Below, piece by piece: positions 4,333-58,191 of a stretch of DNA of 64,000 nt (within the stretch, counting starts at the first letter, position 1; every line of letters starts with the position of its first letter). The notes below the pieces were generated by a model. It saw only the letters and a program-made list of their open reading frames with translations. It searched no databases and was not told where the DNA came from. The translations under genes and the position numbers were made by a program. The DNA lies in sequence record NC_042013.1. One strand, given 5' to 3'.

Positions 4333-4407
4333 GGGAGTGTGGCTGACTGGTAAAGCAGATGCCTTCAAAACATTGAGATGCGGGTTCGATTCCTGTCACT
4401 CCCACCA
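4333..4407 (+). tRNA. tRNA with UCA anticodon (opal-suppressor / Trp-like, atypical)
   Basis: Acceptor GGGAGTG/CACTCCC, D arm, loop CT-TCA-AA (TCA 4365-4367), T loop TTCGATT, encoded CCA; C31xA39 mismatch. Confidence 0.85.
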
Positions 4408-18884: not shown

Positions 18885-19016
18885 ATGGATCAGCATGAAT
18901 TAAACGAGCGAATGAAAGCCCAAGACCGCAGGGCGACACGGGACTTTTTTATAATGATTGGCCTTATCTTACTTCTAATAGGAGTATGGCTTGGTGTTTT
19001 TTATAACATAAGTTAA
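18885..19016 (+). CDS. small single-TM protein (43 aa)
   Basis: MDQHELNERMKAQDRRATRDFFIMIGLILLLIGVWLGVFYNIS. Confidence 0.45.
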   Translation: MDQHELNERMKAQDRRATRDFFIMIGLILLLIGVWLGVFYNIS

Positions 19017-19381
19017 AGTTTGCCGTGTTCAAGATATATTCCCGCGAGGTTTTTATCACGCGGGACATACAATATGTTTGCCTTAACTTTTGAACGAATA
19101 CGATCAGCTTCCGTTTTAAAAAGATTAAATTCATCTTTTTTTATTTTCCAAGTACCCATTGCCTGATTAACAACAAGCTTGCTATCCCCATAGATGGTTA
19201 CGTTGGTATATCCTTTTTCCTCGCAATGTAGAAGCGCGTCTATCAACGCAGACCATTCAGCCACGTTGTTAGTTCCCATTCCGAAGTTTCGTCTGTCGTA
19301 AACCTCTTTGCCGTTTACAACATAACACGTTTCCATCATACCGGGGTTTGGGTTACAACCACCATCAAAATATATAATCAT
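19013..19381 (-). CDS. ribonuclease HI-family protein
   Basis: YFDGG..PNPG, TNNVAEWSAL, GDSKLVVNQ, VPRDKN. Confidence 0.9.
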   Translation of the reverse strand: MIIYFDGGCNPNPGMMETCYVVNGKEVYDRRNFGMGTNNVAEWSALIDALLHCEEKGYTNVTIYGDSKLVVNQAMGTWKIKKDEFNLFKTEADRIRSKVKANILYVPRDKNLAGIYLEHGKL

Positions 19382-20051: not shown

Positions 20052-20247
20052 GTTGCACCTCCGTTAATTATAAAACTAGAATGATTTGAAGATGTATTCA
20101 AAAATGGCAATCAAACCACAATACGTAACCAGATTCCCAAATTCAGATGGTACGTGCGGGAAGATAATTGCAATTCTGTCGTCCATTTGAATAACTCCTT
20201 TTTGTTTCATATTCAATAGTTATACATCGAACTATAAAAATGTCAAC

Positions 20248-20275
20248 AAAAAAACCAGCCTTTCGGCTGGTTTTT
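20248..20275 (-). terminator. intrinsic terminator closing the tRNA/ncRNA operon
   Basis: CCAGCC-GAAA-GGCTGG plus U tract on minus strand. Confidence 0.85.
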
Positions 20276-20338
20276 CAAAGCAAGGAGTGCTAATCGGGTT
20301 TTTTCTATTCCAAAGATAACCAAAAAGCTTCGGCTTTG
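20276..20338 (-). ncRNA. 63-nt repeated small-RNA element, copy 1
   Basis: CAAAGCCGAAGCTTTTTGGTTATCTT-variable-ATTAGCACTCCTTGCTTTG; second copy at 40642..40705. Confidence 0.65.
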
Positions 20339-20341
20339 TAG

Positions 20342-20426
20342 CGTTACAGATGGCATTCGAAGCCAAACCATCCCCACCATCAAAGTGCTATCGTATGCCG
20401 GTCTTCTACGATAGTGGTCTGTAACG
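20342..20426 (-). ncRNA. tRNA-like structured RNA abutting tRNA-Cys
   Basis: 9-bp closing stem CGTTACAGA/TCTGTAACG, T arm TGGC-TTCGAAT-GCCA, 8-bp internal hairpin. Confidence 0.7.
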
Positions 20427-20502
20427 TGGAGGCGCGGGTCAGGGTCGAACTGACATAAATCTCCTTTGCAGGGAGCTACCTAACCATTCGGTGCACCGCG
20501 CC
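20427..20502 (-). tRNA. tRNA-Cys (GCA)
   Basis: GGCGCGG/CCGCGCC acceptor, loop CT-GCA-AA, U73, encoded CCA. Confidence 0.95.
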
Positions 20503-20511
20503 AATGAAGGT

Positions 20512-20553
20512 AATGTACTATATAACGACATTACCTGTCAACTACTATTTATA
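20512..20553 (-). promoter_or_regulatory. tandem late (TATAAATA) and sigma70 (TTGACA-18-TACATT) promoters
   Basis: TATAAATA 20546-20553; TTGACA 20536-20541; TACATT 20512-20517. Confidence 0.65.
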
Positions 20554-26766: not shown

Positions 26767-27225
26767 TTATTCCTTAGGCGCGGTTACTTTAGCGATTTCA
26801 CGCTGAATGATTTCGTTGGCAAGCTTTCGGTCAAGAGAATTGCCAAATTTTTCACCAAGCGCTTTCATAAGAACGCCGATAGCCTTTTTCGGTTCAGACA
26901 GCGTTGGGAGAATTCCAACCACTACTGCTTGAATAGATTCAGCCGAAGCCTGTTCAGGGAGAATAGAATTCAGAAAATGAACCTCCTCTCCAGTGCGCAC
27001 ATAAGCGTCCGTATCTTCCTTCAAGAGGTTTAGTGTTTCTTCAGACTTTTTCAGTGCCTGACGAACCGCCTTAATAGCATCATCATCAGTTACTTCCGGC
27101 TTAAGAGCATCGCGCTCTTTTGCAAAATCATTTGCACGAGAAAGAACCATCTGCGCAAATGGTGCCAATTCTGAACGTTCCTTGCGAAGACGTAGAGTTT
27201 CAGACTTCAGTTTTTCAATAGACAT
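26767..27225 (-). CDS. GatB/YqeY domain protein
   Basis: All-helical; VTDDDAIKAVRQ..KK..E, E...L...LPEQ.S..I, G.LMK.L. Confidence 0.8.
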   Translation of the reverse strand: MSIEKLKSETLRLRKERSELAPFAQMVLSRANDFAKERDALKPEVTDDDAIKAVRQALKKSEETLNLLKEDTDAYVRTGEEVHFLNSILPEQASAESIQAVVVGILPTLSEPKKAIGVLMKALGEKFGNSLDRKLANEIIQREIAKVTAPKE

Positions 27226-57224: not shown

Positions 57225-57498
57225 AATGTATAAACACAGAAATGCTGTTATTCAAATTCACAGCATTCAAGAGGAAACTGTCAGCATTAAATTATTCTCC
57301 AATGAAATATATCTGGATACCGTAGTAAAGTCTGAGTTACTAGAAGACATAAATGATGGCTTTTATAAGCCTATGTCATCAACCGAAATCAAGTATTTCA
57401 TTGATGATAAAGTCGATTTTTACGAAAATGCTATTACCAAAAATTTCAAAAATTATAATAGCATCATAGAGACACTGAAATTATCAAGAAACCAGTGA
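57211..57498 (+). CDS. hypothetical protein
   Basis: Operon packing. Confidence 0.55.
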   Translation: MKIGEMYKHRNAVIQIHSIQEETVSIKLFSNEIYLDTVVKSELLEDINDGFYKPMSSTEIKYFIDDKVDFYENAITKNFKNYNSIIETLKLSRNQ

Positions 57499-58191
57499 TT
57501 TCATCAAATAATTATCCAACTCTTGATGTGTTGGGAATACAACCCCGTACATTCTTTGTAAGTTATAAATTTTATCGTTATTTATTACAGAGATAGGTTC
57601 AACTCGTAAAATTTTAAAGCTAGATCCTATCTGACCAACAGCATTAACATTCGGCCCTTTACACAAGTCCCACCAAGAACCCTGTGAATAAGTTATCACA
57701 TCATTTCCAGATGGAATTCCGTCGAGGATTTGAATTTTGTAAGGTTCATCTACAGTTGTGAAATATTCACGTAATTCGTCTCGATTGTTAACAAAACGTT
57801 TGAATTTAGCGTTACGTTCTACCAATTCTAACATCTTAGAGGTTACTTCATTTATACATATAAAGCCGTCATATTCAAAGTCATAGAAAAATTCAACATT
57901 TTCAGTGCAGCAATTTGCAGTTTTTAGGTCTGGATACAATAGCATAACGGCTTCAGACATAACTCGTGATGTTGAATTTCGCAAAGCTCTCGCAGCTATC
58001 GGATCATGTTTTGAGATATAGCGTATATGGGAATCTGATGTTATGGGGGTTGATAAATCAGACAATACGCCATTGATTTCGATGAGAATTATGTTCTCGT
58101 CAAAAATGTTCAAATGTTTAAGTATATCCTCGCCCGATGAATTGCGTGGATATGTAGTAATTGTACCGTTATCCAATGTCAACATTATCAT
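57484..58191 (-). CDS. stand-alone ThrRS N-terminal (TGS + editing) domain, catalytic His substituted
   Basis: FFYDF, YKIQILD, DLCKGP, LQRMYG align to ThrRS N1/N2; ends at TGA TAA where the catalytic core would begin. Confidence 0.85.
   Translation of the reverse strand: MIMLTLDNGTITTYPRNSSGEDILKHLNIFDENIILIEINGVLSDLSTPITSDSHIRYISKHDPIAARALRNSTSRVMSEAVMLLYPDLKTANCCTENVEFFYDFEYDGFICINEVTSKMLELVERNAKFKRFVNNRDELREYFTTVDEPYKIQILDGIPSGNDVITYSQGSWWDLCKGPNVNAVGQIGSSFKILRVEPISVINNDKIYNLQRMYGVVFPTHQELDNYLMKSLVS

Follow-up and report, generated by a model that had tools for sequence, protein, structure and literature searches.

Results

The stretch of DNA analysed here (the window, 64,000 nucleotides (nt) long) corresponds to positions 426381-490380 of NC_042013.1, the genome (490,380 base pairs, bp) of the jumbo Agrobacterium phage Atu_ph07 (Polybotosvirus), which a 361-base query spanning the element matches at 100% identity. 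On the minus strand of the window, at 20342-20426, lies an 85-nt element that is a real, selected and apparently lineage-restricted transfer RNA (tRNA)-like RNA gene, another of the unexplained small RNAs found in phage tRNA operons. It is not a normal tRNA and appears unable to read codons. Our favoured reading, to which we assign a probability of roughly 0.5, is that the element is a tRNA-derived, non-decoding small RNA gene, the second cistron of a unit headed by tRNA-Cys, and that its product would be freed by RNase P. Positions in the RNA are numbered so that position i is window position 20427 - i on the minus strand (1 = 20426, 85 = 20342).

The element follows tRNA-Cys in a compact RNA unit

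The element lies in what appears to be an early-type transcription unit, predicted to be transcribed in the order sigma-70-like promoter, tRNA-Cys, element, structured trailer and terminator (Table 1). Boxes similar to those of the promoter, TTGAC(A/G)...TATAnT, are found at other Atu_ph07 tRNA genes. The first base of the element directly follows the CCA of tRNA-Cys, with no base between them, and because tandem tRNAs in this genome are spaced by 0-4 nt, measured from the CCA of one to the start of the next, the junction is a typical tRNA-tRNA junction. The terminator, with six GC-rich pairs and a 4-nt loop, was not listed by a consensus scan. The trailer and terminator together (20248-20341, minus strand) form a long predicted hairpin with substitutions in its loops, a candidate small RNA (sRNA) of the tRNA 3'-external-spacer type, and the trailer repeats a motif, GAU(U)AGCACU...UUUGA, that is also present in the element.

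Table 1. Features of the tRNA-Cys unit and of the 85-nt element, in window coordinates
Feature	Position	Strand	Basis or remark
Sigma-70-like promoter, TTGACA - 18 nt - TACATT	20512..20541	-	Sequence match
tRNA-Cys(GCA), CCA encoded, first cistron	20427..20502	-	ARAGORN; Rfam tRNA model, 45.1 bits
Acceptor-like helix, 5' strand, RNA 1-9, CGUUACAGA	20418..20426	-	Base 1 possibly a spacer
Hairpin 1, RNA 13-39, 8 Watson-Crick pairs (13-20/32-39), 11-nt loop GAAGACCGGCA	20388..20414	-	At the place of the D arm
Mini-arm ("anticodon-like"), RNA 40-52, CACU-UUGAU-GGUG	20375..20387	-	3-4 bp
Single-stranded linker, RNA 53-61, GGGAUGGUU	20366..20374	-	9 nt, at the place of the variable arm
T-like arm, RNA 62-76, UGGC-UUCGAAU-GCCA	20351..20365	-	62-65/73-76, 4 bp
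Acceptor-like helix, 3' strand, RNA 77-85, UCUGUAACG	20342..20350	-	G85 is the discriminator in the 8-bp reading
Structured trailer, ~65 nt, with hairpin AAAGC-CGAA-GCUUU at 20324-20337	20276..20341	-	
Intrinsic terminator, AAAAA-CCAGCC-GAAA-GGCUGG-U7	20248..20275	-	Read from sequence; Rfam terminator-like alignments

No coding sequence (CDS) covers the RNA unit at 20245-20541, the closest being gp642, which ends at 20549, and the 44-residue gp641 (20076-20210). The RefSeq record NC_042013.1 holds 714 features, all of them CDSs, and leaves 30-35 tRNA and tRNA-like genes unannotated, so that the standard annotation of Atu_ph07 overlooks its RNA genes, this unit included. The genome paper gives 33 tRNAs for the phage; ARAGORN finds 30 in the whole genome, nearly all with an encoded CCA.

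Architecture of the element

The element is closed by an acceptor-like helix of nine Watson-Crick pairs (1-9/77-85) without a bulge, and the T-like arm stacks straight on this helix with zero bases between. The mini-arm can be read in two ways, either as CAC-UUUGAUG-GUG with 3 bp, or with 4 bp and a 5-nt loop when U43.G49 is counted (40-43/49-52). On its 3' side the acceptor-like helix is followed by CUAC, and CCA is therefore not encoded. A first-pass annotation of this DNA had described a 9-bp stem on a 4-bp UUCGAAU arm, an 8-bp hairpin, a CAC-UUUGAUG-GUG arm and the lack of a CCA, and we find all of these on the minus strand. A plus-strand reading was dropped, as the T-like arm would then sit 5', and it is the minus strand that carries the neighbouring tRNA, the promoter and the terminator.

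The arrangement is more than a chance occurrence, since the fold of the element (z = -3.3) is matched in stability by none of 200 shuffled sequences, and since a strict acceptor/T-arm motif occurs five times in the real 490-kilobase (kb) genome as compared with 0.05 times per dinucleotide-shuffled genome. This motif was defined by a TTCRANN loop, at least 4 Watson-Crick T-stem pairs and at least 8 Watson-Crick stacked acceptor pairs, with 12-13 bp in total. In a looser whole-genome scan, the element was the only match with nine acceptor and four T-stem pairs (9/4) that also had the canonical TTCGAAT loop. Alternatively, C1 and G85 may not form a pair but serve as a one-base spacer and a discriminator, which would make the element 8/4 (12 bp) and not 9/4 (13 bp); this 8/4 reading, with its G discriminator, fits the element equally well.

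Purifying selection acts on the element

The flanking protein gp639 has a homologue of 82% identity on Logan and European Nucleotide Archive (ENA) metagenome contigs, which identifies a true relative. This relative was found on seven metagenomic contigs; its copy of the whole unit is syntenic, with the parts in the same order, from promoter and tRNA-Cys through the element to trailer and terminator, and all six contigs that cover the element region (L206-L210, L212) share one 85-nt variant. Identity between Atu_ph07 and the relative is 97.8% in the promoter and leader, 96.1% in tRNA-Cys, 90.6% in the element (8 of 85 bases changed) and 92.6% in the trailer and terminator, where the changes are all in predicted unpaired positions. 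The flanking genes are 71-87.5% identical, with 52-67% identity at their third codon positions (56.8% when pooled), and just past the terminator identity drops to ~60-65%. Eight or fewer changes in 85 bases, against the 43% expected from third codon positions, have a probability of 8e-12. The element is under purifying selection as part of the RNA unit. Protein coding was rejected as the cause of this conservation, as no reading frame is kept with sensible substitutions.

These numbers bear directly on the possibility that the element is no more than a pseudogene, the relic of a tRNA gene in a tandem array that has been kept by chance. The irregular cloverleaf and the non-canonical closing pair of the T stem would suit such a relic, as would the further erosion of the T arm in the relative and the lack of a homologue outside one narrow lineage. 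However, a divergence of 9.4% where neutral sites have reached 43% is not that of a decaying pseudogene, the core stems are unchanged, and the conserved stretch extends from the promoter to the terminator and no further. We strongly disfavour this explanation and consider it extremely improbable.

Table 2. Substitutions in the element, from Atu_ph07 to the metagenomic relative
Change	Location and effect
C1U	Pair 1-85, C-G to U.G
A25U	Loop of hairpin 1, its single change
G49A	Mini-arm, U43.G49 to U43-A49; pair kept by a one-sided change
G53A	Linker; would disrupt the rival rod fold 10-18/45-53
A56U	Linker
U61A	Linker
C65A	T-stem closing pair lost; 65-73 becomes A.G
U72C	T loop, equivalent of tRNA position 60; loop UUCGAAC in the relative, 66-71 kept

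The eight substitutions are listed in Table 2. None of them falls in the 32 core stem positions, which comprise the helix 2-9/77-84 and the stem of hairpin 1 (p = 0.018), and in the acceptor-like helix the whole 3' strand (77-85) and 5' positions 2-9 are invariant in the relative. The change at 72 affects a position, tRNA position 60, that is variable among tRNAs. RNAalifold, run on the two sequences, returned a cloverleaf-type fold with hairpin 1 and a 4-bp mini-arm, and a cloverleaf-type fold is also thermodynamically preferred in the relative itself. There, the canonical T arm has a competitor in an alternative third arm, in which UGGU (57-60) can pair with GCCA (73-76). Robustly conserved, then, are the terminal helix, hairpin 1, the mini-arm and the UUCGAA letters of the loop, but not the exact 9/4 count. 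The 9/4 geometry of tRNA-Sec that had been proposed for the element can be drawn in Atu_ph07, with 13 Watson-Crick pairs, and is not conserved in the relative, which has U.G at 1-85 and A.G at the innermost pair of the T stem.

The comparison also reveals that conservation of the trailer equals that of the element (92.6% versus 90.6%), that the trailer forms a long hairpin in which all substitutions lie in loops, followed by an A/U-rich stretch and the terminator, and that the T arm is decaying in the relative. All three would be in keeping with the element and trailer being one regulatory sRNA of ~180 nt, or an sRNA of the 3'-external-transcribed-spacer (3'ETS) type, which acts by base pairing or protein binding and in which the T loop is a remnant. 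Against this, the terminal helix of 8-9 bp is invariant and delimits precisely the 85-nt unit, the junction with tRNA-Cys resembles one between two tRNAs, and no target or seed sequence was identified. We think such an sRNA distinctly unlikely.

The element departs from a canonical tRNA

Within the window, ARAGORN calls only tRNA-Cys and a UCA tRNA and leaves the element uncalled. None of the families in Rfam (4227 models) matches it at the gathering score, nor at E<=10 when stretches of 451 nt or 93 nt were searched. The canonical 7/5 arrangement of acceptor and T stems is replaced by 9/4, or by 8/4 with base 1 as a spacer. An anticodon arm should have 5 bp, a 7-nt loop, U33 and a purine at 37; here there are 3-4 bp, and a U stands at 37 in UUUGAUG. 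The stem at the D position has 8 bp and an 11-nt loop, and there is no variable arm. The T loop, UUCGAAU in Atu_ph07 and UUCGAAC in the relative, does fit the UUCRANY consensus, but the closing pair of the T stem, C-G in Atu_ph07 and A.G in the relative, does not fit G53-C61, which is near-universal in tRNA T stems. With selection on the element and no match in ARAGORN or Rfam, the first-pass description of a tRNA-shaped RNA that is not a normal tRNA is borne out.

Several other origins were considered and rejected. Descent from one of the phage's own tRNAs was dropped, as the similarity is no better than that of shuffled sequence, and an interrupted tRNA, comparable to the three in this genome described below, was dropped because no deletion of a segment gives a canonical cloverleaf. 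An attP-like tRNA fragment, the tRNA-like domain of a tmRNA and a Y-RNA or YrlA were also discarded: there is no Rfam match, the helix is perfect and without a bulge, and Atu_ph07 is treated as lytic in its published description.

The 8/4 reading raises the question whether the element is an irregular tRNA that can be charged, like the allo-tRNAs, with G73 and the anticodon UGA for serine codons, and with a role in translation or as a suppressor. The allo-tRNA/(8/4) tRNA class has a 12-bp acceptor branch, arranged as 8/4 or 9/3, and a G73 or U73 discriminator (PMC5389517), and (8/4) tRNA-Ser and tRNA-His are known from alpha-proteobacterial phage tRNA clusters (PMC5389517). The longer acceptor stem, 4-bp T stem and G73-type discriminator of these tRNAs (Mukai et al. 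2017, PMC5389517) are common to the element only if it is 8/4; the 12-bp branch and the G85 discriminator exist only when base 1, C in Atu_ph07 and U in the relative, acts as the kind of spacer seen at other tRNA junctions of this genome. Also in keeping with this idea, the 7-nt loop of the mini-arm puts UGA at the anticodon position, and the phage encodes a CCA-adding enzyme. However, allo-tRNAs, compared by their published description, possess a genuine anticodon arm, a variable arm of great length and a long D stem capped by a tetraloop, and the element is without all three. The absence of a long variable arm removes a requirement of seryl-tRNA synthetase (PMC5389517), and a normal tRNA-Ser(UGA) is already present in the phage. 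Taken with the short anticodon stem and its U at 37, the 8-bp stem and 11-nt loop at the D position, the C-G or A.G closing pair and the silence of ARAGORN and Rfam, this makes a chargeable tRNA very unlikely. Some members of "irregular tRNA" polycistrons are themselves thought to be non-translating regulatory RNAs (PMC5389517).

A likeness to tRNA-Sec (9/4 in archaea and eukaryotes, 8/5 in bacteria) had also been suggested. The 13 stacked base pairs are common to both when C1-G85 and C65-G73 are counted, and both have a long stem at the D position. By contrast, the UCA anticodon, the long variable arm and the 6-7-bp D stem with its 4-nt loop are all missing in the element, and no Rfam family, among which a selenocysteine tRNA model is to be expected, matched at E<=10. 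The two pairs on which the likeness depends, 1-85 and 65-73, are not conserved in the relative.

Relatives of the element

No paralogue was found in the 490-kb genome with R1, a covariance model built from the element, or by a structural scan, and blastn against 50,697 phage records returned no homologue beyond Atu_ph07 itself. When IMG/VR and GTDB genomes were scanned with exact and degenerate patterns, only Atu_ph07, ordinary tRNAs and chance matches in coding sequence came up. When synteny was followed through the adjacent methyltransferase gene, at 3 IMG/VR and 80 metagenome loci, a nearby tRNA-Cys was seen in phage Phosso only and no homologue of the element appeared; nor was the element found at the loci of more distant RNase H neighbours. 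In the searches made, the element appears to be restricted to one narrow lineage.

In Sinorhizobium phage Phosso (PV764938.1), ~100 nt separate a TTGACA...TAAATA promoter from tRNA-Cys (L075:15712-15813, plus strand). This sequence contains a T-like arm, UUGGG-UGCGAAU-CCCGA, and can form an acceptor-like pairing in either of two ways; it carries no annotation and is called by neither ARAGORN nor Rfam. It lies 5' of the tRNA and shares GGUUUGG-N-U-N-CGAAU-N-CC and a CGUU...AAC end with the element. Homology is not demonstrable, as R1 scores it at 10.7 bits (E=7) and it is without the conserved hairpin. Two further irregular tRNA-like candidates on which ARAGORN is silent come from metagenomic/IMG/VR huge-phage contigs. 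One (L139:3390-3482, plus strand) is 93 nt long, has UGCAAAU as its T-like loop and contains an internal hairpin of 7 bp, and the other (L013:11633-11772, plus strand) has 140 nt, a normal T arm and acceptor stem and a very large interior.

Discussion

A proposed processed RNA with a tRNA-like end

In the mechanism that we favour, the acceptor/T end (an 8-9-bp helix on a short T-loop arm, 12-13 bp in all) would have been kept as the part read by processing enzymes, and the D and anticodon domain would have been replaced by the conserved 8-bp hairpin and the mini-hairpin. Host RNase P would cut at the 5' end of the element, most likely before G2, which is 12 bp from the T loop and has C or U at -1, the usual preference of bacterial RNase P. 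A single cut of this kind would leave tRNA-Cys with an essentially finished CCA end and would free the 85-nt RNA as a presumably stable product, and a 3' cut past the discriminator would free the trailer. A processing signal was among the functions first suggested for the element, and it is a plausible one, the element abutting the CCA of tRNA-Cys as tandem tRNAs in this genome abut each other. Comparable arrangements are MALAT1 mascRNA and the 3'ETS-leuZ sponge of E. coli. In such systems RNase P and RNase Z or E set the ends of adjacent RNAs by way of a module shaped like a tRNA or of a neighbouring tRNA, and a conserved spacer RNA shares a transcript with a tRNA; both are cellular and not homologous to the element.

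Processing need not be the whole function. The near-invariance of the 5' two-thirds of the element, and of the hairpin especially, implies a sequence-specific partner, either protein or RNA, and because pure processing leaves the near-invariance of hairpin 1 and its loop unexplained, the released RNA probably has a partner of its own.

Several observations weigh against release by RNase P of a tRNA-derived RNA. Such strong conservation of the hairpin is unneeded for a pure processing role, and six of the eight changes lie within 49-76 (p = 0.014), so that the T-arm half, which RNase P should need, evolves fastest. In the relative the pairing probability of the canonical 4-bp T arm is as low as 0.05. 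For the Atu_ph07 sequence, the minimum-energy fold places a rival 9-bp stem, 10-18/45-53, where hairpin 1 should be (-28.0 versus -26.7 kcal/mol), and with only two distinct sequences of the element there is no compensatory covariation. Finally, the element is absent from phage Phosso, which is the nearest relative that has been sequenced and whose syntenic tRNA-Cys is flanked by unrelated sequence.

A possible ligand for tRNA-binding proteins

The tRNA-like end without decoding capacity, together with selection on sequence, beyond shape, in hairpin 1 and the mini-arm, would also suit a tRNA-shaped decoy or ligand that titrates a protein recognizing the acceptor/T end or the tRNA shape, with the hairpin giving specificity. 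The large tRNA-related toolkit of the phage, which includes a CCA-adding enzyme, a Thg1-like enzyme, peptidyl-tRNA hydrolases, a YqeY-domain protein and a tRNA_SAD-domain protein, speaks in the same direction. The protein bound could be a defence sensor or a toxin of the host, EF-Tu, a synthetase, or a phage protein such as gp705, which resembles the editing part of threonyl-tRNA synthetase, or YqeY-like gp656. However, no partner has been identified, and the T-arm half, the usual contact of tRNA-binding proteins, is the least conserved. We consider a role of this kind unlikely. Anticodon nucleases, which the first-pass annotation had named as targets, are particularly doubtful, because with 3-4 bp and a U at 37 there is no credible anticodon stem-loop for the element to mimic; a decoy for acceptor-end binders such as EF-Tu, synthetases, gp705 and gp656 is possible.

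Of the two phage proteins, gp705 (57484-58191, minus strand) is labelled "threonyl-tRNA synthetase", has 235 residues and shows only a tRNA_SAD (editing-type) domain; gp656 (26767-27225, minus strand) is labelled "tRNA amidotransferase", has 152 residues and shows only a YqeY domain. Both are weaker decoy candidates than their annotations imply. Their genes lie 37 kb (gp705) and 6 kb (gp656) from the element, and no link to it was found.

In a related proposal, the element would be a tRNA-shaped adaptor or decoy whose acceptor/T end enters the tRNA machinery while hairpin 1 and its 11-nt loop engage a host defence or a phage tRNA-binding protein. We rate this, too, as rather improbable. If true, phages would have a hitherto undescribed class of RNA for counter-defence or the control of translation, and T4 rnaC and rnaD might be given a function by analogy.

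Comparison with the T4 stable RNAs

Those two T4 RNAs, rnaC (species 1, 139 nt) and rnaD (species 2, 119 nt), are the closest analogues of the element. The layout in T4, with tRNA-Arg, 1 nt, rnaD, 6 nt and rnaC on the same strand, is like that in Atu_ph07, and rnaC finishes in the canonical T arm CCGGG-UUCGAAU-CCCGG, stacked on an acceptor-like stem to which both of its ends contribute, with an interior that is not tRNA-like. The Atu_ph07 element likewise stands directly 3' of a tRNA in the same orientation; its acceptor/T end is tRNA-like and its interior is not. The T4 RNAs differ in being longer, in the encoded CCA of rnaD and in the mismatches in the acceptor stem of rnaC, whereas in the element the 9-bp helix is perfect, the T stem has 4 bp and the 8-bp hairpin is characteristic. 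They are not homologous by sequence or by model, the best score of R1 on the T4 rnaC/rnaD region being below 8 bits. T4 rnaC and rnaD are non-decoding and their function is still unknown (PMC3014915; PMC9697503).

Small tRNA-like RNAs have long been known in phage tRNA clusters, and those of T4 have gone unexplained for ~50 years. The element adds an independent, non-homologous case of a tRNA-cluster small RNA, in a jumbo phage of a plant pathogen. Its size of 85 nt, the clear signs of purifying selection and the mapped constraint make it a tractable system in which to ask whether such an RNA is processing punctuation, a decoy or a regulator.

Other tRNA-like genes and annotations in Atu_ph07

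Three interrupted tRNA genes lie on the minus strand of the record, at 68160-68280, 323906-324023 and 335108-335213. They carry hairpin-forming inserts of 48, 46 and 33 nt at the same site in the anticodon loop (CUUU|..|UAA, CUGU|..|UAA and UUUG|..|UAA, respectively); they are uncalled by ARAGORN and score 55-57 bits with the Rfam tRNA model. Inserts of 33-48 nt are far too short for group I introns. When the inserts, which lie between positions 35 and 36, are taken out, the tRNAs become Lys(UUU), Asn(GUU) and Thr(UGU). The Atu_ph07 genome paper names Asn and Thr as the two amino acids that lack a phage tRNA, and UUU is the Lys isoacceptor that ARAGORN did not find. Genes annotated as tRNA-Asn and tRNA-Lys in other phages match the exon halves, and two of the three genes are adjoined by HNH endonuclease genes (gp090 and gp465). 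In the literature searched, we found no paper describing these three genes, which would supply the "missing" Lys(UUU), Asn(GUU) and Thr(UGU) and are possibly of greater interest than the element itself.

A further 82-nt tRNA-like gene, at 331026-331107 of the record (minus strand), has a normal acceptor stem and T arm and an 18-nt anticodon loop, AUAGCAUUUGCGUUUUGA. It adjoins the HNH endonuclease gene gp460 and is uncalled by ARAGORN, and by Rfam at the gathering score. The UCA tRNA at window positions 4333-4407 (plus strand) is named "tRNA-SeC(tca)" by ARAGORN, yet it is a normal UCA-anticodon tRNA, with a 7-bp acceptor stem, a 5-bp T stem and an Rfam score of 60 bits over the full 71-position model; the UCA tRNA of Atu_ph07 has already been reported as an opal suppressor (PMC6102473). 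Among the protein genes of the window, gp638 (19013-19381, minus strand) bears an apparently misleading "phosphoglycerate mutase family" label, as its product matches the Pfam RNase H domain (E=2.6e-11).

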